Origin: Oculina patagonica
Lineage: Eukaryota
Length of the DNA: 64,000 bases
Direction of reading: 5' to 3'
NCBI RefSeq assembly: GCF_052425735.1
Contig: NC_135762.1
Span: 27,900,001-27,964,000, forward strand
Shown here: piece after piece, positions 2,814 through 62,534 of the stretch
Layout: the number at the start of each line of letters is the position of its first letter
Numbering within the stretch: the stretch's first letter is position 1
Made by a program: the position numbers and the translations under genes
Notes under the pieces: generated by a model
What the model saw: only the letters and a program-made list of their open reading frames with translations
Told to the model about the DNA's origin: nothing
Database searches by the model: none

Positions 2814-2912
2814 TCTCTAACTTGATCTAATAGTATTGTTCCTTGTTACTTAACAATGAATGTAAAAGGTAGTTGAAGCAAATGCTGCATGTGAATGACA
2901 AATGTACTATAA

Positions 2913-3511: not shown

Positions 3512-3794
3512 TAATTTGTAAAGTCTTTGGCTATGTTAGCTGAATGTCACTTCTCAGTATTTACTTGTAGCGCTGTATAAAGTGGGGTAATAACGCTACA
3601 TTGACAACATTGAACAACATCAAACTTTTTTGGTGTTCTTTCTCATTGTTGGCTACATTGTACATGTTACTATTTACAGCAGTTTGGTCATGTCAGTTAA
3701 ATAATATGTGAATGGGAAAAAGCTGTGAGATAAAAGTAAGAAAAAGTGTCCATACTTTTCAACACAATATAATTTCTAGTAAGTTAATTATAAG

Positions 3795-12671: not shown

Positions 12672-13023
12672 TTAACGATGCAAACGAAAAGACGAATTGT
12701 AATGGAAACGGATAGAAATAGCAGAAAGTGACTAATGGCTTGAAACAATGTTCGCTAGACGTTGGCAAACCAAAAATCTGCCCTGCATCTGTAGCGTTGC
12801 CAACTATGATCTTTAAATCTCTCACTAATCCATTTAAAGGGTATTATAACAGGACTTTATATACTATCATATTTGGGAAATGGATGGTTGGACACGATTT
12901 TTACGATCGTGTGCATGTAGACACCAAGGATTATTTTAGTTTCGCGTAAACAGCTTAAGATCGAGTGCAAGTGTGTTAAGACACTGTCAAGGTTAAATCC
13001 CAGCAGAAGATGATGTGTGCTCC

Positions 13024-17406: not shown

Positions 17407-18815
17407 ATGATTCCGCGGAGGCTAAAAACGATATCTACTATTGCGCTCTGTGCTTTAGCCTTATGTGTGATGTTGAACGCAGTAGTGTTTTTGAAAACTG
17501 TCAAGTCAGCTCAAAGAGGTATAGTAAATAACTTTTCTACTATGTGCATTTTCTTCTACAAATAAACTTCACTGCTGCACAGCTAGAGCTGACTCAGTCG
17601 TAATAATGTGATCAACGCATAATTCTCGCTGGTTCAACCCCAGTATAACAGGGATGAAATCAAACTGAATGATAAACTGTAACTATTATGGTTTCGTTGA
17701 AACGTTTCATAATACCATCTTTGCCACCTTTGCTGAACTGAATTAAATTAAACACCTGGATTGCATGTATTTTGCTGTTGTATGTATTAACGTTTATTTC
17801 ATTTTTAACAGTCTCTTCCATGCAGAGAACCTTGAATGTTAATTTGCTGGAACCGAGAAATACAGAGGTAAGTTCTGCCTAAAAATTGTGCTGGCATACA
17901 TTCATGGCGAAAACTGAAAAGGGTCAAAATTTGTCATTGTGTTTTTGCATAAAATGTGAAGCAACTTGTTCACAATTTCCTTTTGCAATCTCTCCATTTC
18001 AGGATGACAGATTGCCTTTTAGCACAGAAGAAAGACAACGCGAACTTAAAAGTCATCTGACTGATTATTGCCGAGCAAATAAGCATAAACGAGGTTTGCC
18101 GAGCCTGTATCGTCTTCACATTATTGAATCGCCTCAAATTGTCTTCTGTATGGTTCCTAAAGTAGCCAGTCGTCAGTGGAGGGCTATATTTAAGCAACTG
18201 CGCCTGCGCAAAGGGCAAATGCGAGCTAATCTGGATCAATACGACGCAACAGATATCTCCAGTTTCCTAAGGAACTCGTACAAGTTTATGTTTGTTCGAG
18301 AACCTTTTGAGCGTTTGTTATCAGCTTACAAGGATAAATTTGTTTCAACAAGGCCAGTGGATCGACATATGCTCGATACTTACGGAAGAAAGATTATAAG
18401 GAGATTTCGTCCGAACGCCACCCAAAAGGCACTGCAAGCCGGTGACGACGTCACCTTCCCAGAATTCATAGAGTACATTTTAAAAGAAGGTATTCACGAG
18501 GGCCTGAATTGGCATTGGAATACGTATGAAGATCAGTGTAGGCCTTGTAGTGTGGAATACAACTTCATAGGACGCTTTGAATTTCTTACCCAGGATGCAG
18601 AGTATGCATTGAAGAAAGCTGCAGTTTATAATTTGACTCTGTTTCCGAGCAAGACTAGTTATTCAAAAACACACCAAGAGTTGATAAAGTATTATTCACA
18701 GATCCCCCTCGACTGGATTATACAGCTTGGTCGTGTTTACCGCAGCAGTTTTGAGATGTTTGGATATCCTTTTCCAGGTCCCCTCCAGGTCTTGTTTTAT
18801 AACGTCACTGGTTAG
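17407..18815 (+). CDS. Carbohydrate sulfotransferase, CHST11/HNK-1ST family; exons 17407-17518, 17812-17867, 18003-18815 (~326 aa)
   Basis: Type II signal-anchor in exon 1; 5'-PSB motif FCMVPKVASRQW, 3'-PB motif FVREPFERLLSAY, and HW..Y...C.PC...Y..IG.FE. Confidence 0.9.
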
Positions 18816-37662: not shown

Positions 37663-40600
37663 ATGGCATGGCCAGGATTAAAGTGGTGGCATATAAAAAA
37701 TGCATATTATCTGCAAAGCAATGTTAAGTTACATGTTCTTTTCATATTGCCTGGCTACGTTACTTGTCATATAGTATCGTGCTTACAGGAGAGGGCCAGG
37801 CTTTCATTAAGTAACGACGTTGCGCTCCACCGAGCCAGGCCCAGTCTAAACACTCTATAAATTCTGTACGTATCATCTCTGTATATCACTCACAAGCTCA
37901 GTTCTATCTCAGGTGCTGACAACTCTAAACACAGAGAGGTTTATGTTTCAAAGACTGGAGATGACTCTGAAAGTTGTGGTCCACGCAGTACGCCTTGCAA
38001 GACCATAGGACAAGCCGTTCGTCAAGTGGACTGGAACGGGTACATTTACAATGATGGTAAAGATACTGAGAAAAACCCTTATGACTGCAAGCCCGCGATA
38101 AATAATAAGTCACATGTTGGAATCAAAGTTCAGAAAAGTTTGCACATGGTTGGTATGGAATACACACCACACATTTCCTGCTTTGGTGGACTGACATTTC
38201 TTTCCAACACAAAGGCACTGAAGATTGTTCTATCAGGCATCGTTTTTCGGCAAACACCTCTGAGTTTTCAAGGTTGTGATCTAGTTAAAATACTCAACTG
38301 TTCCTTTGTAAACTCGTCGACAGCTTTGACGGTTCGCATGGAAAACAACACAAGCATGCAACTTGATATTCAAAACTCCTCGCACTTTGAAAACAATACT
38401 TCATGTCTAGAAGTGTTCGTATTGAACAGCGTTGAAAATCGAGATCAGTTTCTTACTGTCGATGTCAGTGATACAAAATTTCAGAACAACGGGCTTCTAC
38501 AGATCGGTTAGGAAGAGGAGCTATAACAATAAAAAACGAAGTAGGAAAAAATTCAAGCATCGCACATGTCCAAATATCGTGCTTCAAGATCGCATTCATA
38601 AACAACCGTGGGTACTTTATAAACCTTGACTTACCAACAGCTACTACGAGCGAAGAATACGTGGATATCAAGCTTATAAATAACACCCTTTCTCATTTGA
38701 TAAGTTCATTTCGTAGAAGAACATACAGCCAAGTAAACAGTTTGTACACTTCTCGTGCAAGACAAACACGTGCTCAATTCAGCAACTTCAGATGTTCTCA
38801 CAACCACTTATTGCGATGTATAAAGATTGTGTCTGATGAAGCCGTTGTAACAATTCGAAACTCTTCATTCGTTGGACAAACTATAACAAACGACAGAGGG
38901 GCAGCGGTGTTTCTAGAGTCAAAAGCAAGCGCGACCTTAGTTTTGATCAAGAGCAGGTTTCGACGAAATAAAGCAAAAGGAGGTGCGGCGATGTTTATTG
39001 AATGTAAAGACGGGATCTTAAAGCTTAATATTTCATTCGTTAATTTCACTGAATGCACCGCAAAATCGTACGGAAGCGCAATATCGGCTGGGAATCCCAA
39101 ATGTCGTTCCCTCATGAAAGAACGGATCGAGGACAAACAAATTTACTGTAGACTTAAAAGAGGTCCAAGTACAGAAATCCTACGGAAAAAAGGTTGCCAG
39201 TGTCCACATCCTGCTGTATAATGGAAAGGTTACCATCAACAATTCTTCGTGGAGCAACAACCAAAATTCATCAACTTATGCTTTGATAGTGCAGAATACA
39301 GGTGGTAAAACTAACATCACAATTTCTGGATGTTCCTTTATGCGAGGAGGCACTGTTAGAGTTATGGCTACGAGTAAACATGCAACAGGAAGCGTTACCG
39401 TTGAAAACTGTATAACGTCTAATCAACCAAAAGGACTAAAAGTGAGCAGTTTAGTATCTGAGTCCAAAGTTCAAAATCAAGGTGATCAAAGTTGTATTTT
39501 ACTCCATACTCGGCACTGGACTCGCAATATTTCCATCGACTTTGGCAGTATGATGAAATACCGGTTGAAATTTACATCTATAACTGCACATTTATCAATA
39601 ATTCGTACGACATTCTGGTACATCGTAAGGCTACAACCGAAGTGAAGTTCACCATTAGGAATACCGATTTTAGCAGCAGAAAGAAAGAATTCAGAGGAAA
39701 ATTTGGGATTTATTTTAGCGTAAATCAGTTAAGTAAAGTAAGTTCCTCAAACGCAGTTATCAAACTGGACAACATTTCATTTGATTCCCGACCTTCTAAC
39801 AGTTTTCTTTTGCAGTTTCCTGGTAAAAAAACGTTTACAATACAACGATCGACATTTCGAAGTGGGACTTGCCTTTGTTGAAGACGTTTTTCGTCATGCC
39901 GATCTTTATACTATAGGAACCGGTGCCATATCAATACTTAACAACCCTGATAAACTCCAGAGGACGGGTTGTATTAGGAGGATTACAAATGAAGACATTC
40001 ATTCTTTGTGGAATTACGACAGTGATGTGATATTTGAAGATGTTTTGTTCGAGGGAAGCGTGGGATTAACTGCTGGCGCTGTCTACATCAGCAATGGAAA
40101 CGTGACGTTTAATAGATGCACGTTTCGCGACAATTTTGCAACCAAGCGTTCCGGCCATGTTTATTCAGCATACGGAACTGGCCGAGTTGTGTTTAAAGAT
40201 TGCTTTTTCTCAACATCAATGGAGAAGATATCAGTAAATGACACAACTTTTGACAAATCCACATTTCCTGTATTCTGAAAGTGGAGGACCTATTCTGTTT
40301 CAAAACACATCAATGGTTTCGGACAACGCTGAAAGAGCGCGTTACGCCGTAGTTGACATTTCCAGTGGAGGATACGTTACTATCGACAATAGGACAACAA
40401 TTGAATGCGGGCAAGGAAGCCAGCTGTTATTTGAAAATTACACCCACTTCGCGTATTCTGAGAAAAACTGCACCTCTTGTAGGATTAATGTAACAGTTTT
40501 AAAATATTCCTGTAGGCTATGCCCTCCTGGTTTTTACAGCCTTCAAAAAGGAGTTTCGCAAGGTTTGAATGTGAAGGGCTCGTTTAACTGTTCGCCTTGC

Positions 40601-42224
40601 CCCTATGGAGCCAACTGCATTGAGGACAACATAGCTTCGAAAGCAAATTTCTGGGGCTATCCAATTTCCAATAACCTGAGCTTCTATGCGTGTCCAGAAC
40701 ATTACTGTCAAAGTCCAGCTTCTAATTCAAAAGAGTACAACAGTTGTCATGGAAACAGAGCGGGTTTTCTCTGTGGAAAGTGTGCTCCAGGAGTATAGTG
40801 AAACTATGTTTTCTACTGAATGCCGCAAAAGTACTGAATGCAACAACCATATGCTATGGATAATAACAATCTTGTTGTCAACTGGATTTACCCTTTATCT
40901 TTTGAGTAAACCACCGATTTTGAGTTTGCTTGGAAGGCAAATTTTATGGTTTAGAAAAACGGAAAACGCCTGCGTCATACAAGACTTAGGTCACGCCTAT
41001 CAACACTCGGACCGTGGGTACCTAAAAATTACATTTTATTTCTATCAAGCAGCCGAACTACTGATTGTCGGCTCCACGGAACATTTACTCCGAAAGATTC
41101 CGTTTATTTTCAGCGTGTTTGCTGCTTTTAATTTTCAAGTAAGAACTCTAAACAGAGCGATAGACTGCCCTCTTGCAGGACTTACTGCAGTTTCCAAGGC
41201 GTTGCTACTTTCTGTTACAGTTTTCCTCACAATGGCCGAAGTTGTAGTTATATACTGCCTGAACTTTGTTTTTAACAAGATACGACGAAAAGAAGGACCG
41301 TCTCTGATCCATTACATTGCTGTTTTCATAGAGTTACTGCTGTTAGGTTACGAGCGGCTTGCAGAGACGGCGCTCAAGCTCTTGCACTGTGTCCCTATTG
41401 GCTCCAAAAATCGGCTGTTTATCTATGGGGAAGTTCTTTGTTGGCAATGGTGGCAGTACATTCTACTTGCTTACATTGTAGTATTTGTGGTTCCTTTTAT
41501 TATTGTACTTTATTGTGGTTCTTCCATGCTCTATAAAGCCTCCATTTCTGTGTGGGAGTTTCTTGGAGCTTGCATACTTCCACTGCCCTTCCTCATTTAC
41601 TGGTTTTTGAAGAGGTTTCTGCAAAAAAGGGAAAACAATTCTGTGAACACACAGGCTAACAACAAAGATGTTTTAGAAATACTGCATGGTCCCTTTCGTA
41701 AACCAAACTCTGAAGATACAGGAACGCTCTACTGGGAGAGCATTTTGATTGGTCGACGGTTCGCACTGCTTGCTTGTCTTGCCTTCATTACAGACTCAAT
41801 GTTCCGAATGGTTTGTATGACTATTGCCTGTGTTCTCATTTTACTCCATCACATACTGAAGAATCCTTATCACGATCCGATCGCCAACAAAGCTGAAACG
41901 TTCTCTCTCCTGACCTTAGTCATTATGGCAATTATTAACCTTACAAAAGCAACTCTCATCTCGTTTGGAACAAGCATTGATGGTCCAACCAAGCCTTATT
42001 TGGAAACTCTGGAGTGGGCAGAGGTCTGTGCTTTGGCGTTTGTCCCAACAATGCTGTCTATTTTTGTTGTTTTTGCCATTTTCTCTCAGATGGTACGATT
42101 ACTTATTTCTCTGGCAATGAAAATATACTGTTGCTTGCAGTGGCATCCATATCGAATATCGTTTTATTTCGCAAGACATCAGGAAAGACCTCTTCTGGAT
42201 ATTTCCGAAGGAGACGGATCTTAA
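37663..42224 (+). pseudogene. Disrupted gene for a large membrane protein: parallel beta-helix-like ectodomain, Cys-rich region, multi-pass (~7) TM domain
   Basis: YVSKTGDDSESCG...PCKTIGQA N-cap motif, repeated NCSF.N / F..N.A..GGA turns, C..CPPGFYS, CPYGANC, C.GNR.G.LCG.C..GYS, then a hydrophobic C-terminus. The reading frame shifts at least six times, and there is an in-frame TAA at 37858. The 5' end is uncertain. Confidence 0.75.
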
Positions 42225-44761: not shown

Positions 44762-44906
44762 NNNNNNNNNNNNNNNNNNNNNNNNNNNNNNNNNNNNNNN
44801 NNNNNNNNNNNNNNNNNNNNNNNNNNNNNNNNNNNNNNNNNNNNNNNNNNNNNNNNNNNNNNNNNNNNNNNNNNNNNNNNNNNNNNNNNNNNNNNNNNNN
44901 NNNNNN
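44762..44906. other. Assembly gap (N run)
   Basis: Run of n characters. Confidence 1.
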
Positions 44907-46609: not shown

Positions 46610-49400
46610 TGTAATTTAGGAATAATACCCTTGGCCTCCATTTTGACGGTTTGTGCTCCTAGTAAAATGCTGGTTATGACCATGAGTTAAAGCAGAAGAA
46701 AATATCGAAAGAATTGAAAAAGTACATGCCCACTTTAGACATATTCAGGGGGGGGGGGGGGCTTAGTTCGGAAGCCGTTATTAACGCTTTTCCCTTTTCC
46801 TGTTGAATCCATTTCTTGCCTTTGTTTTAACGGTTTGTTTTAAAAGGATTCCCCAATCAATCAAAACAAGGAAGTCGTTAAGTACGTCCAAGGCCTCACA
46901 TAACTCAAACATGAGTTTAATGGTTCATTTTTCTTTAGTTACTTGAACTTAACTGGTTTATTTAAATATTACAACAAAGTAATACATTCACCAAAACGAA
47001 AGGTTTACGATTAATGATATAATAATTCTGTGCTGTATTTTTTTTTTTTTGACCAAAGGAACTAATGACAATATATAAATTTAATCGTGGGGCACATAGA
47101 ATACCGCCAGACAAGTTCATTTATTCGATCTATAAAAAAGAGCTAGTAAATTCAAGAAAACTTATTCTGATAATTTTAACGTGACACCTTTGTAGTTAGC
47201 TCGTGCATTTGTTCAAAAACGAGAAGAAAAAACACATGGTGAAATACTTATCTCCAATCGAAAATGTTTTCCGTCGCTGTCAGAAACGTCTCAAGGGAAC
47301 TGTGCTCTTTTCTTTTCCTGGAAGTAATTTAATACAAAAAATATTTAACAATCAAAGATCATCTAAAACCCTAGGCTAGGCTAAGCTTTGGCCTATTCTT
47401 TAAGGCGTGGGATAAATAAAAATATAATAATAGCTAACAGGTATTTACAAGGCTGGCAAGTGTACAGACAGTATTTTTTGTCGTGACTTTTGCAAGTGTA
47501 ATGTTTTCATAAACATAATGAAAAACAGGTGAAATGCGCTCAGATTACTGATTTTGGAGGAAACGGTTTAATTCATTTGTTATTTAGATTGCCGACTGAA
47601 TGTTGAAATGTTTAAGAGAAGACAAAACTTCCTGATAACTTGAACGGAACTAGCGCAACAAACAGAATAGACACGAAAATAGCATTGCAAATCAAGTTGC
47701 CGGATGCGTTGCGATCACTTGGTTGAAACGCTTACCAACAGATATGAGAAACATTCGGACACAATGCAACAACCCGCTTTTTGACAAAACAAAACGGTAC
47801 CAGCTATAGTTTAATAAGGTTATAGGCCTCGAGGCAGTGGTTAAAAAGCATGCATGAAGGACGTCTCGGCCTCGCAAACTGGAACCCGATCTTCGTGAGC
47901 ACGGAGCTTTTGGTCTGCCTTTTTGGAATCCCATTAAATGGAATTGTGATTTTTACAATTTATAAAAATATATGTCGTCGCACCTCAGCCCCGACCTATC
48001 TTACCCTCAGTATCGCGGTGAGTGATTTCCTTTCTTGTGCGATAGCTATTCCACTGTCGATCGCAAGGCATTTCCAAAAGGAATGGCCGTTTGGCATGGC
48101 TGGGTGCAAGGCTCATGCCTTCTTGATATTCCTACTCGCCCTCGTCTCCATCACACACTTGGCCGCCATTTCAGCGGGGAAGTACTTGACAATAACAAGA
48201 TCTCTAACAAGAGATTCTTATTTTAACAAGGGAAATGTGCTGTTGATAGGCTTGTCCTCTTGGATTTACTCGTTTGGCTTCAGCGTGGCACCTTTGTTAG
48301 GATGGTCGAGATATGGCCCAGAAGGAACAAATATAACATGCTCAGTCAAATGGGATTCATCTCTTCCAAGCGATCAGGCATACTTTGGAGTTGTAATCTT
48401 CACTGGATATTTCCTACCCTTGGCAGTGATCACGTTTTGCTATTACAAGATCCATCAAGTTTTCAAACAGATCGTTGTTAACACTTCCCGAGGAGGTCGT
48501 CTCGCAATGACTGCGACACAAGCTCTTTTGAGGAAACGTCGTAAATCTGCCATGTACTTTTTAACTATCATAGCTGGATTTCTACTCCCGTGGTCACCTT
48601 ACGCTATAGTGTCCTTCCTTTTAGTTCTAGGACGAAAGGTTAATCCTGTAGCTACCACTGCATGTAGTGTCTTTGCCAAGATTTCGTTTTTCCTTAAACC
48701 AATGTTGTATGCCATTTGTAAAGGCAAGTTTCGACGGCGCTTCGTTCTGTTAGTTCCTTTAGCGAAACAGAACAGAGTCGTAAGACCAGCTGTTTTACCT
48801 TCTGTTTCGCGAACATTGGCTCATTGAACAGCATGCATCAACTTCTGCTGGGATTCAACTTGGCAGTGTCTCAATACATACTTGGACTAATGGCCGTAAG
48901 CTGTTTACGCGAAAGTATAAAAAAGACTGTGTAAACATGACGCACAATCTTAAAAATCATGTCAAATCATTTAGTTCGCAATGTTGATAGTATAAATCCC
49001 GCTGTAATACCCTACAAATGGACAAAAATAATGAAGTGATTTCAATAGAGGGATTTAAGATCATTGTGAACAACGCTACTGGTACAGGAAGGATTTTTGA
49101 TTTTCCAACGTCTAGCGAAAGCTGTTCCGTGTCATTAGCCATTTTGTAAGGTTTTCCGTTCCAATTGCCTTACAATATGTATTTTCATTCACCATTTCGA
49201 CGAGATGTATAAACATCCTAAGGTTTAAAAGGGATCAAAATATAAATTTCTATCAAAGGAGGAATGGAAAAGTTGAAACTGTCAATTTGGGTAGCCGATA
49301 TTTTTTCTCCAAGTAAATGAAATGATATTAGCGGCCTGCAGCTGTTAGCAATTTATAAGCAATTGTAATATTTAATAGCATGAAAAAACTGCAAAAATAA
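46610..49400 (+). repeat. Inverted segmental duplicate of ~12240-15370 (opsin plus flanks)
   Basis: Collinear reverse-complement similarity in the CDS and in both upstream and downstream non-coding DNA. Confidence 0.85.
47850..48827 (+). CDS. Opsin (intronless), copy 2, 325 aa
   Basis: Close paralogue of copy 1. K296 (FAKIS) and E181 (WSRYGPEG) are present; NPxxY reads KPMLY. Confidence 0.9.
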   Translation: MHEGRLGLANWNPIFVSTELLVCLFGIPLNGIVIFTIYKNICRRTSAPTYLTLSIAVSDFLSCAIAIPLSIARHFQKEWPFGMAGCKAHAFLIFLLALVSITHLAAISAGKYLTITRSLTRDSYFNKGNVLLIGLSSWIYSFGFSVAPLLGWSRYGPEGTNITCSVKWDSSLPSDQAYFGVVIFTGYFLPLAVITFCYYKIHQVFKQIVVNTSRGGRLAMTATQALLRKRRKSAMYFLTIIAGFLLPWSPYAIVSFLLVLGRKVNPVATTACSVFAKISFFLKPMLYAICKGKFRRRFVLLVPLAKQNRVVRPAVLPSVSRTLAH

Positions 49401-52099: not shown

Positions 52100-55000
52100 T
52101 TAATTTCCGGGGTAGGGCGGTGGTGGCTCTCCAACATAAGAAGAATGTGCTGTTTCAAGTTGTACTTGCAGAGGCGTTGTGCATTCTGGGAAAGCGGTCA
52201 TTGAGAATTGTGGGTAAAATTCTAGCTGCTGGGGAGGTACTCGGGCAGACTGCTGCTCGTTCGGTATGGCAACTGTTATTGCTGTTGGCTGATCCGGGCG
52301 ATGTGTCCCAAAAATGTATTTGCGATCTTTGCAGCACAAAACTAAAAAGATAAGCCCGCCAATGACGAAGATTGCGAGGAAAAAGAAGCCAACAAATGTG
52401 CTCGCGTTGAAGGCTAAAAATAAAAACGATAAAAGAATAAAACTAATAATTAGATAATCGTATAAACGAACGAATGAATGAATGAACGAATGAATGAATG
52501 AATGAAGGAAGGAAGGAAGGAAGGAAGGAAGGAAGGAAGGAAGGAAGGAAGGAAGGAAGGAAGGATCGTTTCCCTTAAATCTTGTTCCTTTACAAAAATA
52601 TTTACAGTTTAAAAAAGAAGTTTTGAATAAATCAGTTGAACTTCCACATCAAACTGGAAGTTTTCATGGAAACTGGCAGTGCGGCAAAGAAGATGACTGG
52701 AAGAGTTTCCCTGTAATGGCGGAAACGACGGATTTCGCGGATTTCGCGGAAATTTTCAGATTAAAAAATAAAAAAAAATAAAAATAATAAAAATAAAAAA
52801 TAAAAAAATAAAAAATACATTTTTTATTTTTTTTATTTTTAATATTGATATATTCAACTATTATACTTACAGTTTTAAAGAGAAGAATTAAATTAAATCT
52901 AAAAATTTCCGCGAAATCCGCGAAATCCGTCGTTTCCGCCATTATTGGGAAACTCTTTCAGTCAACTGCTTCGTAGTACTGCAAGTTTCCATGAAAACTT
53001 CCAGTGCTGCAAAGCAGTTGACTGAAAGAGTTTCCCAATAATGGCGGAAACGACGGATTTCGCGGATTTCGCGGAAATTTTTAGATTTAATTTAATTCTT
53101 CTCTTTAAAACTGTAAGTATAATAGTTGAATATATCAATATTAAAAATAAAAAAAAAAAATAAAAAATATTTTTTATTTTTTTTATTTTTTATTTTTATT
53201 TTTTTATTTTTTTTTTATTTTTTAATCTGAAAATTTCCGCGAAATCCGCGAAATCCGTCGTTTCCGCCATTATAGGGAAACTCTTCCAGTCAGCCGCTTT
53301 GCAACACTCCCAGTTTCCATGAAAACGTTCAGAGCTGCAAAGCCCTTTCTTACTATCTTTTCTCCTTCAATGTGAAAATGAAAATTGTTTTTTATAGTTT
53401 TATGTATGGTGTATTTTTAACATAAGTCGTGAAAATTTTGTGATACATCACGAACATATATGCACCGTAGTAGATGATCTTTGACTCAAACATTTTTCAT
53501 TCTTATTGCGGCTTCGTTATCAAGTTAACTGTTAACTGGTGCGAAATGGCTGTCGATTGTCAGGTCAACAGATTGGCTGATCAGTGCAAATAATCGCGAC
53601 ATTAAATTCATGAAACTACTGTGGCGAAACAATTCGTCTAGAAACTCTCTGAAAAGCATTTTGGAATTGATGAAGTGACACAATTGGCTATTAAAAAATG
53701 TCGCTATGGCTTCGTTATCGGCTTGATTTTAGTGTAAAAATAGCTGCTAATTACTAGGTTATGTAATGATCTGCTGATCAACGCAAATAATCGCGATATT
53801 AAATTCATGGAAATACTGTGGCGAAAAAATTCGTCTAGAAAACACTCTGGAAAGCATTTGGGAACTGATAGAGTGACACAATTGGTCATTTAAAAGCGTC
53901 ACTGTGGCTTCGTTATTGACTTGATTGTTAGTGTAAAAAAAGCTGTAAATTACCAGGTTAGGCGATGATCTGCTGATCAGTGGAAATAATAGCGACATTA
54001 AATTCTTTCAAGTAATCTGGTCCCTACTGAGTTCATTTTTTGGCTATAATTATTCCCGGGGAATTAGCAAGTCTGCTCTCTATAAAAGCAGAACACGTTT
54101 AAAGGCATAAATCAGTCCAAGATGCAGAGCTCGAGAGCACGTTTCCCTGCGAGACAGCTAAACAGTCGAACAATTAAGAGCGCGGCGTTGTGCTATTTAA
54201 GCCCAGTGGTTTTGGGAAAGTGTAGCATTACAAGTGCGAAGTGCGTCTGCAGAGTTCAAGAGAGTGGTTTTCAGGACGCTTGGAATAGCGTGTGCCGAAC
54301 TAGAGATGCCTGTGATAGCGCACTACGAGGTTAGTTTCTGATATTGCGATTTTAAACTTGTTCAGTGTCTCTTGGGTGAGATAACCAGAAGCAGATCATT
54401 CGGTAATAATTTTTTGCTTTGTCTATTTCGCAGGCATGAAGAATGTAGCGTTCTTTTTTAGTGCCATTAGTACGCAAAAGTTGAAGAAACAGCGAGATAA
54501 GAAGAAATCAAATGATCATGACGAGAATGAAGATAGCGATGATGCGGACGAATATCCAGAATTAAGTCAGTTAGCGAGTTCAACGAGCCAACAATGGGCC
54601 GAAAGTCACGCATCAATTATAAACCACAAGCTTTGCCCAGCTGTGAGCTACTGGATCGCGTCGACAACGCCCAACGGTGCTCCACGTAGCCCCCTTGGTA
54701 TCCATCGTGTTCTCTTGGAGTGCAACGTGGACGTATTTATAAATCAGGTAACAAAAATAACATGTTTATTCACATTCGTACCAATCGCATTAGCTTCACT
54801 AGCCGGATGATAAAAAGTAGTTACTAGCTTATATGAAGGCAGTGAATCAAGCAGTGAAAATGTGACAATTCAAAGGACCATTCCAATCATCGAAATTAGT
54901 TTTGCCTTGAATTTACGCTACGTCGGGCTCCCTTAAAACTTGACAGTACTCGGAACGACGAATCACTTGTTAGGACTAGGTCAAAGTTGCTCACCACCTT

Positions 55001-58000
55001 AGAACTTTAATTAACTGGCAACTGTTCTGAATTTTAGGTCGCTTGTCACGAAGGGAAAGAAAGTGGCGCAATGAAAGAGCTTTTTAAAGTCCTTAAAGAC
55101 CACAACAACACCTTCATGGTGGAGTTGGTGAATTCGTCTTACAAATATTGCTTTCGAGATGAATTTGAAAGTGTCCTGGGTGAGGCCGATTCAATAGATG
55201 TTGACGAATGTGGTACCGAGAACGTGGTCAGAATTTGTCTAGTCGATCCCTCGTTCCATTCCAGTCTTTCGGTGGCGTTGGGAAAACTCCAAATTGCAAA
55301 GTTGGTCATCGAGCACTTCGGATTCCACGTAGACGGCTCGGATATTCAGACAGGAAACGAACCGGTCGTTGAAAAGGCAAGATTATCTGATAAACTCACA
55401 GTGCTTGTGAACGATATTGGCATCGCCATGGAAAAGCTCGGGTACGCTCTCTATGCTGGAAAGATCTACAAAAAGTGTGAAAAGGCAAGGTACACCTATT
55501 GGTATAAGTGCGAAGTTGAGGCGTTTGTTAATAGCTTGGCGGCCAATCGATCTTTCAAAGCCAGACTACTTAAGGACATGAAGAAAGTCATCGAAATCCT
55601 AGCCAACCCACATTGCGAAGTCATTCGACCTCTTTGCGTGGACTACGATTTGATTGAGGTGAACGAAGGCCAGTGCTGGTCAATCAAGGAGCGACGTTTC
55701 TTGGAAAATGCGATCAAAGACAAGGACATCGGTCATGTTACACCCCGAGCGTTTTCGCCATACGATCCAACCAAAGTTCCGGATCCAAAATATTTCAGAG
55801 AGATCTTAGAGAACAGCCTAACGGAAGCCGAAGTTGGGGAGTTCTGCGAGGATTTCATCAGGCTTCTACATCACAACCAGAAACGACACAAAGACAAAGT
55901 ACCATGTCTGATTGGCGCTGCGAACAGCGGTAAAACGAGTTTATTTCAACCGATCTTAGGACTCGTACATCACAGCAACATAGCGACTATCACGAAGCAG
56001 CGCGTGTTCAATAAGGCCATGATTAATCGCTTTACAGAAGTGATTTTCATTGACGAAGCCAGTCCCTCAACCTTAGACATCGACGATTGGAAAATCCTTA
56101 CCCAAGGCGGATTTACGGCATGCGACGTAAAGTACCAAACGGCAAAGAGCTTCATTAACCGTTGTCCAATGCTTTTGACCGCCCAGACGAAGCTTGAATT
56201 TAAGGCCGATGACCAACCCGCCATGGATCGAAGGTTGAAGAACTACACCTTCAAGAGTCTGCCCAACCCGAGAAAGAAAGCGACAGAGTGGCTTAGGAGA
56301 CACCCCATGGAGTGTGTTGCGTGGGCGGCTACGAAGGCGCGTCCACCTAGTGACCAAGAAGAGAGCTCGGACAACGGTGAAGACGAACAAGAGCCAGAAA
56401 TCGGCGATGGCGTCCTTAAAGCCGAAGAGAAGGATGCTCTGCGGACGCTGTCACTCTTGGAGGAGAGCTGTGAAGATGATTCGCTAGAAGAGACGAACGA
56501 AGCGGTCAGTGCAATGGAAGAAAGCAACGGCGAACCGGACACCTTGCAAGACCACCTCAGTCAGCTTCAGCCGGGCAGTCTTAGACACAGGCAAATGGCC
56601 CACATTCTGGAAACAGAGAAGGAGAAGCAGAAACAGATAGACCAGTTTTACCGGACGAGAGATGTCGAGAGGTATGAAGATGTTCAGACGGCGGTAGATC
56701 AGGATGAGGCACGAGGCGAAGCTGCGAGAAAAGCGTTCGAGGGCAGTTGGTTGAGAGACACCGAAATTGAACTCAAAGAGTGTTGCGATAAATATCAAGC
56801 TACGCAAGACTCTTTCGTGCGCTCGAATGTGAAGGCGTGGATGGAGGTTCTGTGCGAGAAGCTGAAAGCTCACCACCAAGCCCTGGGCACCTTTAACACC
56901 ATCGAGGCCATAGAGGAGCGAAAGAAGGTGTGTACAGCACTCGGCCTGCTCAGGAAAGAAGATCATCGTCTGGTGACAAGTGTGGCGGAGCGACTCCCGG
57001 TACTAACTCGCCCAAGTGCAGATGCAGACGAAATTGTTGCACAACAGGATGTAAGCGATGAAAGCAGTCAAGAACGGAGGCTTTTCATCACTCCAGTGCC
57101 CAGTACTAGTCGTAGGCCGTTACGCCAACACGACGACTGCGCGGTGTCCGAAGCACTGCTCCGAGCAAGTTCTACCTTAAAGCGGAAGAGAGGTTCCAGC
57201 AGTCAGCGCGGAAGAGAGCAACAAAGAAACACCATAACAAAGTATCTCTCGAGCACGCAACATGAGTGAACGCAGTCTGACGATCAGAGAACGGAGAAGA
57301 GTAGCGACGACGAGATGTTGTTTGTCAGTATTGTAGTTCTAAGTTACATGTTAAGCGACGTGCCACGATTACGACAGGCGAGATATAGAATTCATGTATA
57401 CAGACAGAGAGATATAGAACATTGCTCGCTACCAGGAGTGTCACAAAAAGTTCTTTCTGTTGTTGTTACAAAAGAGTGTACTTGTCAAGTCAAGAAATTT
57501 ATTTAATGATGTAGTAATTTATTACTGTATTCTTTATTGCACAGTCACGATTAAATGCCTTTCTTGCTTAACACAAGTTTGAAATGTCATTGCTGTCCTT
57601 GCCTTGGTAATTAAACTAGCTGCATTTTCATTCCAGCCCTTTTCTTGAGAGAGTCCGCCGTTCTTCCGTCTTGAAATTTGAAATCGGGATCTCTCAAAAT
57701 TGCCGTCCACTGTCCAAACCCGTACCTTTTTAAACCTTTCTTGAGAAAATTGTCCTCTTCTTCCGTGAATTTCAACACCCGTCGATGATTTCGTTGAATT
57801 TGCAATTGTTTTTTGGGAGGGGAGTCCCTTTCAGAAGAGGCGCTCATTGATTCTGCTGTTCCGACCGATTCTGAAATTGTTGAAGTTGTAGCGCTAAACC
57901 TCGTGTGCACTTCCTTATCCAAATCTGAGCCTTTCGTTCCTTGTAGCTTTTGCAGACACTCGTGAGCTTTCACAGCAACTTCGCGCGATCTCTGCTTTTG

Positions 58001-61000
58001 ATAGTGAACTTTTGCAACGGCAGAACTGTGTTTTTGGTCTTCTGACAAAATTTGTTGCTCCGTGCTTGTGAGTAGATTGAGGCTTTGCGTTTCGACAATT
58101 TGACGATAGCGCGTTGGATGAATATACTTCCCGATTGCATCGAACACCAATTTACTCATGACGTCGCCCAATTTGCTATGCTGGCCTCCGTTTCTAGTGA
58201 CAAGTACGAAGTCGCACTGGGGTTTGAGTAATGGCCTTACGAAATTGATGTAGCTTTCCAGCACCCGCATGCTTGCATCAGTCAAAATTAATGAGTCAAA
58301 TCCATACTTGCTGGCCGTTTTGAACTTTTTCTGGTCAATGAATCCTCCGTTCGCCTTAGCTGTTTTAACCATGTCCACCGTCAAGTACTGATAAGTCATA
58401 GGGCGAGATCCCTTCACCTTTATGAATAAATACACGGCGACAAATTTCGTGGCAAATGTTAGGTCCAAAGGATTCACTTGACCCGGAATAGTTTTGCAAG
58501 TCTTTACCGTGTTTTCGTAACGAGGCAAATGAAATGTCACCACTTCTAACAGTTCTTCCATGGTTGCCCAGTGCCCTCTAGCATCCAAAGTCTCAATGTC
58601 TAGATCTTGTGTCCACTGCAATCTCATCATCTTTGCCACGGTTTTGCGCGCTCGTTTGAGGTACAGCTCCGTTGAGGACAAATTTCGAAGAACTGTGTCT
58701 GATGCGCCATTTATCTTTCTGAAGTCGATTAATTCGGAAATCGCATCAATGTAGCCCAATCGGCCACCGTGTCCGAGTTTGCATTCATCTTGCAGGTAGT
58801 CGATAAACTTGAACAACAAACAATGCGAACACAGGCTAAAATCCAGCACTTCAAAACTCAATTCCTCTTCATCTTCGCAGCAAAATTTGAGAAATTTGAA
58901 ACACCTCTTGACTATCTGCTGGGCTACACGATCTTTCTTGCAACCCCCACCACTTCCCGTCAACCACTTCACAAACGATTCGCCAATTTTGCTGGAAACT
59001 GAAAATGAAGGCAAAACTCTGGCAGTTTGTACTGTGATTTCACTCGATTTAACATCACTGGCGCCTTCTCTTTCGTATGCAGCGAGTATTCCCAGATCAG
59101 GTTTCTCGTCAAAGTAAAAGAACCAACTGTGCTTGGTATTCACATGTTTTCTGCACCCTCTCTGACTTTGAAAGCCATCATGGTCACACACTTGTATTGG
59201 GCAATGATACAATCGGTCGGTTTCATTCTTTTCCAGGTGAAGCCGTTTTGGTTTGGGCGATGCTCCATCGATATTTGACCAATTGATTTTACACTTCTTG
59301 CTCATTTTATCATCAAGGTAAAATGGTCAACACAATCTCCTAGAACTGAATTTCTTTTCCAAAAAAATACGACGCACCAATTACACCTTAAGGAACTTCA
59401 TTCGTGTTTAAACTTGGCAAGGCGCGCCTCTTCTTGCCTGCCCTCATTACTATTGTGCAAAATTCATGACACCCAAGATTGTGCTCAGCTTGCCCAAGCA
59501 GGTCTATGCGCGCCCCATTGTTTTTCTTCATTTCAATGGACAATATAATTTAGGAACAAAATGGTCAAGTAAGCGCAAGGAATTCGGAACCAAAGAGTCC
59601 TGAATTTGTTCCTAAATGAGCAGTTTAGGAACAATACGTTCCATTTACAAACAGGAACTCGGAACAAAACGGTCTCAAATTATCAATTTGGGAACAAATC
59701 GTTCCATTCACAGTTAAGAACTCGGAACAAAACGGTCCTAAATTATCAATTTGGGAACAAATCGTTCCATTCACAGTTAAGAACTCGGAACAAAACGGTC
59801 CTAAATTATCAATTTGGGAACAACGCGTCCCATTTACAGATAGGAACTCGGAACAAAACGGTCCTAAATTATCAATTTGGGAACAACGCGTCCCATTTAC
59901 AGATAGGAACTCGGAACAAAGCAGTCCTAAATTATCAATTTGGGAACAATATGTTCCATCAACAGTTGGGAACTCGGAACGAAATGTTCCTGTTTTATCT
60001 TAGGGTGAACGTTTTGTTCCTAACTTTATAAAAAGCTGGTCCTCTTAAGGTTAACAGGAACACAAATATGAGGAACAAATTATATTAGAGGAACGTTCCT
60101 AAAGAAAAGATCGGAACATGCTACAGAACTTAAAATCAGTTAAAAACGGGCAAAGATATAAATTACAAGTCACAAAACAGTTAGTTGAGCGTTTAGGTAA
60201 AATGAAAGCAATCATCGAAACTTGGTAAACTCTACCGCACTCAAAGGCTGTAAAACACGCAGTGAAAATTTTTGGGAAACGTTAAGGAAGGAAGGAAGGA
60301 AGAAGGGATGGATGGATGGATAGATGGATGAATGATAAATGAATGAATGAATGAATAATGGTAGACTTTTCTGACCGTAGAAAAAGGCATCAAGGCAACT
60401 GAATGGAATTAATTGCGATAAACTGAAATCAGTAGATCTCGGAACGGTAGTCTGAATATTAAATAGTTTTCTGTTGTTTTATCTTTTTTCTTGTTTGACT
60501 GTACTTGTGTGTGATTTTTTTTATTTCTTTGCCTCTTGGACTATCTGTTTATCTTCTTGCTATTAATACTTAGAAGATCTAGGAGAAATAACCCTACAGA
60601 TACATTGAAAGTATTTAGATAAAAAACTGATAACCTAACACAAGCAAAGCTCAATGCAAGTTACCTTCGACTTCTTGTAAGAGGGATAACAATACTAGGA
60701 AATAAAACAAAAAATTTACAGATGCATTGTGGCTCAAAACATTAACTAAAAAATTAAGGTCGAAAAAAAAAAAAAACAACACTGGTTCATCAGCCATTAA
60801 ACCATGTCGACTGTTCACCCGTGAGCTCTCACTAAACTAATTAGTTTAAAAATCCTAAGCTGAATCTCTTTGACAAAATAAAATCAATCATTAACGCAAC
60901 TGTATGGGTTGCAGCTAAGTGTGTCATGGTAATATTATTAGTATGGATAATCAAATGGTGACGAGTGAAATTAGGAAATAATTTTACGCGCGTTTTGTCC

Positions 61001-62534
61001 AAATTCTAATAATTATTAGAATTTGGACAAAATGCAAGTGAAATTATTTTCTAATTTCACGAGTATACCATTTGATTACATTTTAATGTCATAGGTGACA
61101 AATTACGCTTGCAATCGTAGGTGTTTTTGACTGTTACATTGCATCGCGATTTCTGAGCTTTGAAAAGTTGAAAGCATACATTTTGCTTAAGTCGCAAGTT
61201 TTTTAGTCTTTGAATACAGCCTTTCAGAGATTCCTTTTTGCTGTCGACAAAAAGTTTCAAAGATGAATCAACTGTCAACTATTTCTCACATTATGACCAT
61301 AGTTCGTCTTGAATGAACTGAAAACGGCGCCCGTGTAAAACGCTCACAAATCCGCTCGATGCCATTCATGTAATTGGCTAATTGTAAGACGTTTTGAAAT
61401 ATAAAATATCATCAAAAGTTTTATTACATGGCCAAGGCTAGCTGGCTAAGATGAAATTCAAGCGAAAATGTACAAAGTTTAAGCTTTAAAACATCTTTTA
61501 TTACGGACGCCATCTTGCCACTAACTACGTTGCCATGGCAATTTTATAATTTCATATGTTAAATTATAAATTAACGTTGAAATTTCGCGCCAAAATTAAG
61601 GAGTAATTTGTCACCTATGATATTATGTCTCTTATAATTACATGATCTTATGTGAAATTTATTGGCCTACATACATCCCAGGCGTTTTATTTTCTTCAGA
61701 GCGAAAGTACGATACATGTTCTCGTTTTATTATTTTTTTTTTCGGCAGCCGTGCACATCGGCGAGCTTAGCCAGAAATTAACGGAGATAGAAAGGTAACT
61801 ACGTACCTTAACTGTTTTGCATATGGCTTACATGCATTAATTATGCATAGTTTTAAAATATTTTTTTGTGTTTTAATTTACCTTGATTCAAGCTTTTTTT
61901 TTCCTTTGTTTTAATCTCATTATTTTATTTTCCTTTGTTTTAATCTCATTACCAGACATAAGCATACCCAAAAACAAAGAAGATACAATTTGAACTAAGG
62001 ATAAAATTGAACCACCACCTATAAAGTATTCCGGGTACATTTGTACTTGCAATTAGAGGTTATCTGTGATAAATTAAATTGTGGAGACAGACTTGTTGTC
62101 GTTTTGATTTTGTTATTTTGTGTCAAGGACATTTTGTTTCGATTTTAACACCGGCTTTACTAAGTATCACCATTTCACTATTCGGAAACTCGCTTCGTAG
62201 AATTTTGCTTTTACTTTGACAGTTTTAATCGAGTTAGACGAAGACAGCGTATGCAAATTTGTCACAGTATCGAAATCGAAGAAATACTATTTTTACGTAA
62301 CATTGAGCACGCAGCGACAAATTGTTGCCTGCGATAATAATTTATGTCTTTAAAGCGTCAAAAATTTAAGCAACATCAGAGAGTTCAAGGAAACGAGACA
62401 AATGTGGAAAGCTAGAACCTACTTTGGATTAACCCAGGAATCGCATGGGATTTCAGCGCGTTACCCGAGTAAGGTAACGAGAAGAAAAATTATAACTTAC
62501 CTAAAACCACAGATGTTAGAAAACATTTCTTCAT
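52100..62534 (-). CDS. Small single-pass membrane protein with C-terminal PPxY; exons 62534-62501, 60694-60665, 52413-52100 (125 aa)
   Basis: Phase-1 GT-AG joins give MKKCFLTSVVLVLLSLLQEVEA-FNAST-FVGFFFLAIFVIGGLIFLVLCC-KDRK...GEPPPPYPGN, i.e. signal peptide, TM and PY motif. Confidence 0.75.
52465..52564. repeat. Compound microsatellite (GAAC/GAAT)n-(GAAG)n, left flank of the integrative element
   Basis: Direct reading of the sequence. Confidence 0.95.
52654..53332. repeat. Nested (double-hairpin) palindrome, candidate replication origin
   Basis: Four copies of ATGGCGGAAACGACGGATTTCGCGGATTTCGCGGAAATTTT in +,-,+,- orientation, separated by A/T tracts. The whole block is also self-complementary about ~52990. 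Confidence 0.9.
53577..54005. repeat. ~198-bp tandem repeat, 2.2 copies
   Basis: CTGATCA.(T/C)G.AAATAAT.GCGA.ATTAAATTC recurs at ~53577, ~53774 and ~53973. Confidence 0.88.
54081..54116 (+). promoter_or_regulatory. Putative Pol II core promoter of the helicase gene (TATA + Inr)
   Basis: TATAAAA at 54081-54087, TCAGT about 30 bp downstream (54112-54116), then ATG at 54122. Confidence 0.6.
54122..57269 (+). CDS. SF3 (D5/NS1/E1-like) helicase; predicted exons 54122-54329, 54434-54747, 55038-57269 (~917 aa)
   Basis: Walker A LIGAANSGKTS, Walker B VIFIDEA, motif C region MLLTAQ, Arg finger AMDRRL. A D5_N-like segment LIEVNEGQCWSI...SPYDP precedes these. Both GT-AG introns preserve the frame. Acidic/coiled C-terminus with basic LKRKR. 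The helicase call is firmer than the 5' exons. Confidence 0.85.
57611..59305 (-). CDS. Tyrosine recombinase with N-terminal C2H2 zinc finger and C-terminal Myb/SANT (TRF telobox-like) domain, 564 aa
   Basis: Catalytic set R (GSRP), K (FKTASKYG), HPTRYR, H (QKHS), Y (KVHY). Zinc finger CPIQVC...HVNTKH. Myb FTEEEDNFLKKGLKRYGFGQWTAILRDPDFKFQDGRTADSLKKR. Confidence 0.88.
   Translation of the reverse strand: MSKKCKINWSNIDGASPKPKRLHLEKNETDRLYHCPIQVCDHDGFQSQRGCRKHVNTKHSWFFYFDEKPDLGILAAYEREGASDVKSSEITVQTARVLPSFSVSSKIGESFVKWLTGSGGGCKKDRVAQQIVKRCFKFLKFCCEDEEELSFEVLDFSLCSHCLLFKFIDYLQDECKLGHGGRLGYIDAISELIDFRKINGASDTVLRNLSSTELYLKRARKTVAKMMRLQWTQDLDIETLDARGHWATMEELLEVVTFHLPRYENTVKTCKTIPGQVNPLDLTFATKFVAVYLFIKVKGSRPMTYQYLTVDMVKTAKANGGFIDQKKFKTASKYGFDSLILTDASMRVLESYINFVRPLLKPQCDFVLVTRNGGQHSKLGDVMSKLVFDAIGKYIHPTRYRQIVETQSLNLLTSTEQQILSEDQKHSSAVAKVHYQKQRSREVAVKAHECLQKLQGTKGSDLDKEVHTRFSATTSTISESVGTAESMSASSERDSPPKKQLQIQRNHRRVLKFTEEEDNFLKKGLKRYGFGQWTAILRDPDFKFQDGRTADSLKKRAGMKMQLV
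59618..59990. repeat. 63-bp tandem repeat, about 6 copies, rich in GGAAC/GTTCC
   Basis: TATCAATTTGGGAACAA recurs at 59681, 59744, 59807, 59870 and 59933. Confidence 0.92.
60284..60358. repeat. Compound microsatellite (AAGG)n-(GGAT)n-(GAAT)n, right flank of the integrative element
   Basis: Direct reading of the sequence. Confidence 0.93.
61085..61624. mobile_element. MITE-like insertion in intron 1 of the small PPxY gene
   Basis: Inverted ends AAT(G/A)TCATAGGTGACAAATTAC. Confidence 0.55.

Follow-up and report, generated by a model that had tools for sequence, protein, structure and literature searches.

The locus considered here raises the question of what kind of DNA carries a tyrosine recombinase together with an SF3-type helicase inside an intron of a coral gene, and how such DNA moves. 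The window, i.e. the whole stretch that was analysed, comprises 64 kb from the stony coral Oculina patagonica. We read the insert as one copy of a large cnidarian integrative family which probably (at roughly 0.7) moves by its own tyrosine recombinase and works in a Crypton-like manner.

An insert in a split microsatellite

Positions are those of the window.
52100-62534, minus strand: host gene (NCBI model, 125-aa product), with the element in one of its introns
52468-52564: left host flank and target repeat, a compound microsatellite of (GAAT)n then (GAAG)15
52565-60283: whole element, element-only sequence of 7,719 bp, each bound uncertain by up to 4 bp
52567-52574, plus strand: left core arm CGTTTCCC; the inverted match to the right end reaches ~14 bp, imperfectly
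52653-53343: nested palindrome of four alternately oriented ~115-nt units with A/T tracts between them
53576-54005: 198-bp tandem repeat, 2.2 copies, upstream of the helicase gene
54122-57269, plus strand: intact SF3 (D5/P4-like) helicase gene, exons 54122-54329, 54434-54747 and 55038-57269
57611-59305, minus strand: intact single-exon tyrosine recombinase gene, 564 aa
59547-60050: 63-bp tandem array, ~6 units
60274-60281, plus strand: right core arm GGGAAACG
60284-60360: right host flank, the remainder of the split microsatellite, (AAGG)n (GGAT)n (GAAT)n

The initial annotation had described a sharply bounded insert splitting a compound microsatellite, and both junctions, as read within the intron of the 125-aa gene, bear this out. 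On the left (GAAT)n(GAAG)15 leads through AAGGAAGGAT directly into CGTTTCCC; on the right GGGAAACG is followed by TT, where the element stops, and then by AAGGAAGG and (GGAT)n(GAAT)n. The termini are the inverted arms (TT)GGGAAACG and CGTTTCCC(AA). As AAGG is common to element and flank the crossover position is ambiguous, and 52565-60283 is the maximal element-only stretch by this junction reading. The host intron measures ~8,255 bp with the insert and ~536 bp without it, close to the ~530 bp first estimated, and the target is the sole microsatellite of at least 8 units within the window.

The two genes are intact and convergent, and the palindrome at the left end and the tandem array at the right end lie where they were first noted; the 198-bp repeat was absent from that description. 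The palindrome has 229-nt arms that are 90% complementary around a centre at 52991/2, and its units hold eight CGGATTT and four GGGAAAC motifs. Folded as single-stranded DNA it reaches -342.6 kcal/mol, compared to -74.7 for shuffled sequences (z = -58). We suggest this nested palindrome as a candidate origin or accessory-site module. The motif GGAAC/GTTCC occurs at 49.6 per kb in the 63-bp array, compared to 1.5 per kb elsewhere in the window; the array may offer protein-binding (arm-type) sites, and in other subfamilies it has 13-15 units. Comparison of the subfamilies shows conservation of the exons, of the array and of the recombinase-proximal end, but none of the introns or of the sequence of the far-end module. 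The palindrome of one further copy, L001, is unrelated to that of Oculina.

Two conserved proteins

The recombinase consists of a C2H2 finger (C35, C40, H54, H59), a SAM-like core-binding domain, a catalytic domain and a TRF-like Myb domain (~512-556). Its catalytic residues R301, K329, R401, H426 and Y435 are invariant among 26 sequences, down to 35% identity, and the structure model (pLDDT 78) has XerA, integrases, XerH, XerD, Cre and lambda Int as top PDB folds. The invariant R-K-R-H-Y set and the Xer/Cre-like fold confirm the identity first proposed for this protein. In the model the Myb domain resembles TRF1 with a TM of 0.88. None of the 26 family members matched the Pfam models DUF3504, GCR1_C or Phage_integrase at E <= 1. 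The recombinase family amounts to 1,718 clusters at 50% identity, and dN/dS values of 0.09-0.23 were found.

The helicase corresponds to a three-exon NCBI model of 917 aa with GT..AG introns, and the ORF at 55071-57269 on the plus strand (732 aa) represents its last exon. In the numbering of this exon-3 ORF, Walker A spans residues 282-289 and Walker B residues 324-329. Both cores are invariant in the family, conservation is maximal at residues 241-400, and DUF5906 is matched by 21 of the 27 members, which speaks for the proposed SF3 assignment; Parvo_NS1 and PPV_E1_C were matched by 13 and 8 of the 27, respectively. For the Oculina protein itself the assignment depends on sub-threshold profile matches, at 23.8 bits compared to a curated cut-off of 27.6. 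It also matches the P4-family primase C-terminal domain weakly, and the best fold matches, likewise weak, are poxvirus D5/E5 helicases, from a structure model of a quality too low for the fold to be confirmed (pLDDT 56, core below 50). No primase or origin-binding domain was identified in the protein. A TATAAAA sequence is found upstream of the gene at 54082-54088. At the protein level the helicase changes at about three times the rate of the recombinase, and its reading frames of 730-800 aa outlast saturation of synonymous sites. NCBI labels both genes as uncharacterised coral genes; in one case a copy has been merged with the model of a host gene.

Copies, junctions and targets

Hundreds of family copies, from near-identical to 75% identical, were found at different loci and in different assemblies. 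Their ends are conserved while their flanks differ, and they are located in introns of unrelated genes. This multi-locus comparison leads us to reject the view that these are host genes or an assembly artefact, which the NCBI annotation as ordinary coral genes might suggest and which we consider hardly credible.

The ends CGTTTCCC and GGGAAACG recur in about 16 more copies, which come from at least four assemblies. These arms are present in the Oculina copy, L001-L007, L009-L014 and the helicase-seeded L022; in L008 the recombinase-proximal end was not found. The gene pair is convergent and full length in the Oculina copy, L008-L012, L014 and L022, partly kept in L002-L007, and still detectable at recombinase identities of 56% and 40% (L015 and L016). 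It stays together, convergent and full length, down to 77% recombinase identity. Hence the two genes do recur as a pair between these ends elsewhere, other corals included, so that the first of the refuting conditions originally set did not apply; together with the conserved exons and unconserved introns this agrees with the discrete two-gene eukaryotic mobile element that had been postulated.

The pair could also stem from a larger virus-like element, such as a polinton-like virus or an integrated DNA virus with capsid and polymerase genes. Viral helicase profiles were matched, and an SF3 helicase is reported to accompany a tyrosine recombinase in some polinton-like viruses (PMC4642659, PMC12220804). 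Polinton-like viruses and virophage-like elements thereby resemble the present family as integrating eukaryotic elements with the same enzyme pair, but they are described as spanning 14-40 kb with capsid and packaging genes (PMC12220804), whereas the Oculina element has 7.7 kb and neither. About 17 copies have both ends defined by the shared arms, as units of 4.7-9.1 kb directly abutting host repeats. The element has only two conserved genes, with no further conserved ORFs, and searches within it gave no capsid, polymerase or packaging match. An internal fragment of a virus is hence very improbable, in line with the two-gene element originally described.

Between copies arranged head to tail the sequence is GGGAAACG-N8-CGTTTCCC, a lox/FRT-like core such as a circular form should have at its joint. 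The junctions are GGGAAACG-ATCTTCTA-CGTTTCCC in L003, L005 and L007, and GGGAAAACG-ATCCTCCA-CGTTTCCC in L012. In the sense of the recombinase gene the 8-bp spacer is subfamily-specific, ATCCTTAA, ATCTTCTA or ATCCTCCA, where the Oculina spacer ATCCTTAA was derived from the two element ends and not from a tandem junction. Single insertions keep the 8-bp spacer intact at one junction, while the other shows its first 2-5 bases followed by host sequence. One full and one partial spacer indicate an exchange inside the spacer, at a short target match. The proposed circular form has indirect support: the head-to-tail junctions rebuild a lox-like site, but a circular contig was not found, and the circular signature was absent from short metagenome contigs. 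Tandem junctions can also be explained by insertion of one copy into another or by unequal exchange.

The centre of the spacer equals the repeat unit occupied, being (CCTT)n/(CTT)n, (CCT)n or (ATCT)n/(TTTC)n by subfamily. The pyrimidine-rich strand of the repeat always lies in the sense of the recombinase gene, so the orientation of insertion is constant. Simple repeats were the target in 13 of the 15 insertions with a readable host flank, as expected from the suggested reintegration at such repeats. The Oculina copy, L002, L014 and L022 sit in (AAGG)n, L001 in (AAG)n, L003-L006 in (ATCT)n, (ATCC)n and (TTTC)n, and L008 and L011-L013 in (CCT)n and related repeats. L009 and L010 are the exceptions, both being inserted in unique DNA where the match is just 2-3 bp (TC, ATC). 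With lox-like junctions, a spacer matching the repeat and a fixed orientation, the junction sequences give good support to a circle as the integrating form and to conservative site-specific recombination as its route into the repeat.

Mode of movement and related systems

In the mechanism we propose, the recombinase would excise the element as a circle and reinsert it by conservative site-specific recombination. Long purine/pyrimidine repeats would be favoured as targets, presumably because the spacer can find its match there in many registers. The finger and Myb domains may bind, as accessory sites, the conserved 63-bp GGAAC array and the repeat/palindrome module at the far end. Once excised, the circle would most likely be unwound by the SF3 helicase, which would also help to copy it at the A/T-rich palindromic module with host polymerases. 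By such copying the number of elements could rise, and the helicase may act in trans on copies that lack it.

The helicase gene is missing in L001 and L013, and a subfamily in which just remnants of it are left comprises at least five loci encoding an identical recombinase. The recombinase is intact in nearly all copies, while loss of the helicase is repeated. As helicase-less copies with an intact recombinase have multiplied, the helicase is dispensable in cis, and judged from these copies it is perhaps unneeded altogether for movement. For the same reason a replicative, plasmid-like role of the helicase is at most putative, and replication as a plasmid or satellite by means of an own helicase, as initially suggested, found no support.

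A self-replicating nuclear plasmid or a helper-virus satellite, with the chromosomal copies as a resting state, would be the initial reading taken to its full extent. Here the helicase would fire a palindromic origin, and the 63-bp array would tether or partition the circle. D5/P4-kind SF3 helicases are replication initiators of viruses and plasmids, and arrays of tandem protein-binding units are typical of episome maintenance sites. The D5/P4-type profile matches, the A/T-rich palindromic module adjoining the helicase gene and the existence of head-to-tail multimers fit such a reading. On the other hand, a free circle was not found and the examined copies were all chromosomal, many of them in megabase contigs. 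Copies without the helicase multiplied, capsid and packaging genes are lacking, and with spliceosomal introns the genes evolve like those of long-resident genomic elements. We know of no helper. We find this episomal reading rather doubtful, and only tentatively put forward its most far-reaching form, i.e. integrative nuclear replicons in corals and other cnidarians, being two-gene circles replicated by their SF3 helicase from a palindromic origin, held by the 63-bp array, and moving into and out of chromosomes at a lox-like site, the 8-bp spacer of which would determine the microsatellite used.

It is likewise possible, though we think it unlikely, that the element is a plain cut-and-paste Crypton whose helicase is a passenger or aids recombination by opening structured repeats or processing the junction. 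The nearly always intact recombinase and the repeatedly lost, about threefold faster evolving helicase would fit, as would the mostly homopurine/homopyrimidine targets, since such repeats can adopt unusual DNA structures. Against it, the pair is retained to 77% recombinase identity and detectable to 40%, and the helicase frames persist beyond synonymous saturation with a strongly conserved ATPase core; this long retention makes a passenger role unlikely. The Crypton-like element with a helicase acting on its circle remains our preferred reading.

Among known systems, Cre/loxP and Flp/FRT share the layout of the core, where inverted arms surround an 8-bp asymmetric spacer. This spacer determines the orientation, and the two partners have to agree in it. 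No sequence relation to these systems was detectable, the fold match being generic to tyrosine recombinases; the arms of the element are shorter (8-14 bp), and it integrates at partial spacer matches. The yeast 2-micron plasmid has a recombinase and ~60-bp tandem repeats acting as a maintenance locus, whereas copies of the element sit within chromosomes. An integrase, a D5/P4-type helicase and repeats are combined, as in the element, in P4-like satellites, PICI and integrative plasmids. These however belong to prokaryotes, mostly insert at tRNA or other genes and possess regulatory genes as well as a primase domain, while the genes of the element are eukaryotic with introns and a primase domain was not found in them; of the likeness seen earlier the analogy of layout stands, and nothing beyond it. 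DIRS, Ngaro and PAT retroelements carry reverse transcriptase and RNase H, and the element has no reverse transcriptase domain.

Cryptons likewise encode a tyrosine recombinase and are devoid of reverse transcriptase (Goodwin 2003; Kojima & Jurka 2011, PMC3212892; the active CryptonF-1_cRei, PMC9977147). In the Crypton model a circle recombines with a short matching target, and excision as well as copy gain have been observed (PMC3212892, PMC9977147). Cryptons are described as having no terminal inverted repeats, and their 4-6 bp terminal direct repeats are the recombination substrates (PMC3212892). The element resembles them in short direct matches at its junctions, here 2-5 bp, and in having no long terminal or split direct repeats, its ends being only the 8-14-bp inverted arms. 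It differs in these short core arms GGGAAACG/CGTTTCCC, in the SF3 helicase as a second conserved gene (no helicase is mentioned in PMC3212892 or PMC13465315), in the conserved 63-bp array, palindromic module and spacer-set microsatellite targeting, and in a recombinase with a C2H2 finger and a TRF-like Myb domain that lacks a DUF3504 or phage-integrase match. By these Pfam models its recombinase does not group with the described Crypton clades (A, F, I, S, V), for which DUF3504-type or GCR1_C-bearing proteins are examples. Judged by its sequence the working appears Crypton-like, with the helicase, the inverted core arms, the conserved array and the repeat targeting as additional features.

The closest published architecture and targeting habit we found seems to be that of the tyrosine recombinases of endogenous crustacean nimaviruses, which are reported to insert into telomere repeats and rDNA (PMC10871703). 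As in the element, C2H2, SAM-like and recombinase domains are combined with insertion into simple repeats, a match at the level of description; these enzymes belong to 200-360-kb virus-derived arthropod genomes, whereas the element has two genes and is cnidarian (PMC10871703). The layout of a microsatellite-targeting recombinase with a helicase was not described in the literature searched.

Our results bear on how such elements behave in animals. Few eukaryotic DNA elements with tyrosine recombinases are known, little is understood of them, and in most cases it is difficult to delimit their ends and sites. In the present family natural junctions reveal the complete recombination site, and the spacer varies together with the host repeat used, which for an animal element ties the sequence of the site to the choice of target. 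The conserved replicative-type helicase partner raises the question whether some animal 'transposons' pass through a replicating circle, a stage that could explain copy gain of Crypton-like elements. To our knowledge a plasmid-like way of life is not known in animals; if the replicon reading were true, the family would provide one, along with a naturally retargetable site-specific integrase. As it lies in introns and simple repeats of reef-building corals, the element is also relevant to the annotation of coral genomes.

Insertion site and anatomy of the element

The window is DNA of the stony coral Oculina patagonica, taken from chromosome record CM126639.1. The bounds given to the element by the initial annotation, 52565-60283 (7,719 bp), were correct, the crossover itself not being placeable inside the shared AAGG. 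The target repeat is the sole microsatellite of at least 8 units within the entire 64-kb window, and the host intron bearing the insert measures about 536 bp once the element is subtracted.

Features of the element and its host gene
52100-62534, minus strand: host gene, NCBI model with a 125-aa product
Left junction: compound microsatellite (GAAT)n(GAAG)15 running through ...AAGGAAGGAT into CGTTTCCC, with the arm (short inverted end sequence) at 52567-52574
52653-53343: nested palindrome of four ~115-nt units in alternating orientation, with A/T tracts between
53576-54005: 198-bp repeat, 2.2 copies
54122-57269: helicase gene, NCBI model with three exons and GT..AG introns
57611-59305: recombinase gene, convergent with the helicase gene
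59547-60050: 63-bp array
Right junction: GGGAAACG at 60274-60281, then TT, AAGGAAGG..., (GGAT)n and (GAAT)n

Two gene models of 121 and 126 aa, close in size to the host gene, adjoin it past the right end of the window (positions 1-5303 of locus L021), and the three together suggest a small tandem family. DNA-level similarity between these two models and the host gene was absent, and when the DNA of the host gene was set against that of a neighbouring paralogue in search of an 'empty' site, no alignment resulted.

The palindrome has arms of 229 nt that are 90% complementary, with a predicted hairpin at z = -58 relative to shuffles; the Rfam search of the element region returned zero family matches. 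Between elements with 77%-identical recombinases, the sequence of the array and of the recombinase-proximal end is kept, while that of the introns, the intergenic spacer and the far-end (helicase-side) module is unconserved. The array keeps its 63-bp period across subfamilies, with 6 units in the window's element and 13-15 elsewhere, and the GGAAC/GTTCC motif reaches 49.6 per kb in the array versus 1.5 per kb in the remaining window. The far-end module keeps its architecture and not its sequence, having direct and inverted repeats of long period together with CGGATTT-like and GGGAA motifs. Judged from the sequence, the array may provide the finger or Myb domain of the recombinase with candidate arm-type sites, and the strongest candidate origin is the A/T-rich palindromic module adjoining the helicase gene.

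Several other features were seen in the window, the first of which probably belongs to another mobile or virus-derived element.

Other features of the window
1578-2813, plus strand: 411-aa ORF with a YqaJ-like viral recombinase/alkaline exonuclease domain (E 2e-15)
3795-5207, minus strand: 470-aa ORF, PIF/Harbinger-type DDE transposase (DDE_Tnp_4, HTH_Tnp_4) with a THAP domain
13024-13995, minus strand, and 47850-48827, plus strand: single-exon rhodopsin-family GPCR genes, 323 and 325 aa
15686-15833 and 44762-44906: runs of N, 148 and 145 bases
17886-18815: sulfotransferase ORF
40686-42224, plus strand: 512-aa ORF with zero Pfam matches, overlapping a 186-aa ORF at 40238-40798

A divergent recombinase and its recombination site

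Direct sequence searches with the recombinase (Pfam, PHROGs, NCBIfam and PDB sequences) matched the C-terminal Myb domain alone, which is of the TRF1/TRF2 kind, and the assignment as a tyrosine recombinase therefore rests on alignment and fold. An all-against-library search (E <= 0.001) gave 1,718 recombinase clusters at 50% identity. In an alignment of 26 members with identity down to 35%, the catalytic set R301, K329, R401, H426 and Y435, the N-terminal C2H2 finger (C35, C40, H54, H59) and the Myb core were all invariant. The AlphaFold model (pLDDT 78) matched the folds of XerA, staphylococcal integrase, Xer, YopR, lambda Int, XerH, XerD, Cre and TelA, and its Myb domain matched TRF1 with a TM of 0.88. 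As the Pfam models Phage_integrase, DUF3504 and GCR1_C matched none of the 26 members, this is a divergent recombinase lineage. The dN/dS between copies was 0.09-0.23.

Distant relatives of the recombinase are located on short metagenome contigs. A relative with 46% identity, the one pointer to taxa outside corals, is nearly identical to a EukProt entry with a label that we take to be that of a jellyfish genome project; if so, the family reaches beyond corals within Cnidaria. One member of the recombinase cluster of P0246 was deposited as a protein from a cyanobacterial metagenome-assembled genome, most likely a mis-binned eukaryotic contig. Bacterial contamination as the source of the element was rejected, as introns are present and copies lie on coral chromosomes.

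In the recombinase-gene sense, used for the site sequences of this section, every element has CGTTTCCC at its start and GGGAAACG at its end; the inverted match, which is imperfect, reaches 10-14 bp. The head-to-tail junctions of three loci (L003, L005 and L007) read GGGAAACG-ATCTTCTA-CGTTTCCC, and that of L012 reads GGGAAAACG-ATCCTCCA-CGTTTCCC. This is the layout of loxP and FRT, namely two inverted arms around an asymmetric 8-bp spacer. Single insertions have the full spacer at the recombinase-proximal junction, and the far junction shows only its first bases, blending into host DNA.

Junctions of three insertions, and the spacers with the repeats in which their elements reside
L004: (ATCT)n...ATCTTCTA then arm; arm then ATCT(ATCT)n
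L013: (CCT)n...CCA then arm; arm then ATCCTCC(TCC)n
Window: (CCTT)n CCTTAA then arm; arm then AT(CCTT)n
Spacer ATCCTTAA (inferred from the two ends): (CCTT)n and (CTT)n
Spacer ATCTTCTA: (ATCT)n, (ATCC)n and (TTTC)n
Spacer ATCCTCCA: (CCT)n

Spacer and target co-vary, each of the three spacers pairing with a set of repeats that contain its central bases. Insertions with a readable host flank lay in spacer-matching repeats in 13 of 15 cases, and all 13 had the pyrimidine-rich strand of the repeat in the recombinase sense. The loci L009 and L010 are insertions in unique DNA, where the bases in common with the spacer are TC or ATC only. Such a junction pattern is expected from conservative site-specific recombination of a circular element with a target that matches it in part, and it agrees with the model proposed for Cryptons (PMC3212892) as well as with their observed behaviour (PMC9977147). 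We put the probability that the recombinase integrates and excises the element through this lox-like site at roughly 0.85.

The helicase gene and other copies of the element

The helicase gene was searched by exon (the exon-3 ORF and exon 2), and NCBI spliced helicase models were mapped onto the DNA and also served as local tblastn queries. The exon-3 ORF (732 aa) gave sub-threshold matches to DUF5906 and Parvo_NS1; across 27 homologues DUF5906 was matched in 21, Parvo_NS1 in 13 and PPV_E1_C in 8, along with a weak match of the helicase to the C-terminal domain of P4-family primases. Conservation was maximal at residues 241-400, and the Walker A and B cores were invariant. A search of PDB sequences gave zero matches, and the protein showed no recognisable primase or origin-binding domain. 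Poxvirus D5/E5 helicases were weak fold matches of the AlphaFold model; as this model is poor (pLDDT 56), they are weak support at most, consistent with the SF3 assignment without proving it. All named homologues are scleractinian (Oculina, Acropora, Montipora and Desmophyllum), from both major coral clades.

For comparison we read 21 further loci. The gene pair was found with the same termini elsewhere, for example in L022; its absence from other loci was the main outcome that would have refuted the initial annotation. L022, an Oculina patagonica locus found from a helicase homologue, holds an 8.5-kb element with the convergent pair, an intact recombinase of 77% identity and the ends CGTTTCCC and GGGAAATG, each within (AAGG)n-type repeats. 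Its recombinase is fused in the NCBI annotation into a host gene model of 1,286 aa (LDL-receptor domain and Myb), which illustrates how the element can contaminate gene models of the host. The full convergent pair is present at five of six ERZ25067879 loci (elements of 8.4-9.1 kb), the sixth holding a 5.6-kb derivative that lacks the helicase gene, and the full pair is also found in L014 (assembly ERZ26692694). In L002, again from Oculina patagonica, the pair is present with each gene apparently interrupted at least once. Short metagenome contigs whose recombinases are 56% and 40% identical still have, on the other strand, partial similarity to the helicase. One end each was sought in vain at two loci, the far one in L002 and the recombinase-proximal one in L008.

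In other copies the helicase gene is reduced to remnants. The Oculina patagonica locus L001 is a 4.7-kb derivative inside (CTT)n, with a 99% identical recombinase, the same ends as in the window and a helicase remnant of only ~70 aa. Assembly ERZ25067872 has an identical recombinase at five loci, 90% identical to that of the window, in elements of ~7.4 kb with helicase remnants covering 26-78% of the window's exon-3 protein. Every helicase-less copy looks like a deletion derivative of the two-gene form. L001 also has a different long palindrome at 12980-13710 (arms ~350 nt, (TAC)n/(TAA)n in the centre), unrelated in sequence to that of the window.

In L003 and L007 a second, more distant element lies upstream (~240-6460), joined through a perfect arm-spacer-arm junction. 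Its helicase homologue is 41% identical to that of the window, and a LINE (RT and endonuclease genes) seems to interrupt it. From these joints it follows that spacer-sharing elements of different lineages occur in tandem.

That the element could be a fragment of a capsid-encoding virus is highly improbable, being ruled out in practice by the defined ends and the two-gene units. Still more remote is that we are dealing with host genes or an assembly artefact, given the multi-locus comparison with its many copies and differing flanks.

Relation to known systems and the possible role of the helicase

The element works like the Cryptons, but its recombinase matches neither DUF3504 nor GCR1_C, the sole sequence-based membership test run, and the helicase, inverted arms, arrays and repeat targeting are extras. 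The closest published analogue in architecture and habit, likened here by description, is the family of C2H2 and SAM-like recombinases carried by endogenous nimaviruses of crustaceans, recombinases that insert into repeats of the telomere type (PMC10871703). A two-gene element of recombinase and SF3 helicase is not described in the searchable literature, where 'Crypton-H' gave nothing relevant either; a curated, unpublished Repbase or Dfam family may exist.

Replication is the usual job of SF3 enzymes of the D5/P4-like kind. The helicase gene is under constraint and its linkage to the recombinase is kept over deep divergence, and for these reasons we favour, tentatively and at somewhat less than even odds, that the helicase would replicate the excised circle. 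What speaks against it is that helicase-deleted copies have multiplied; the enzyme thus either works in trans or is unnecessary. An accessory, non-replicative role is a less likely alternative. We consider it similarly unlikely that the element is a full 'nuclear plasmid or satellite'; the short metagenome contigs gave no circular-contig signatures. Replication of the circle by the helicase, the role we favour, would account for the gain of copies.
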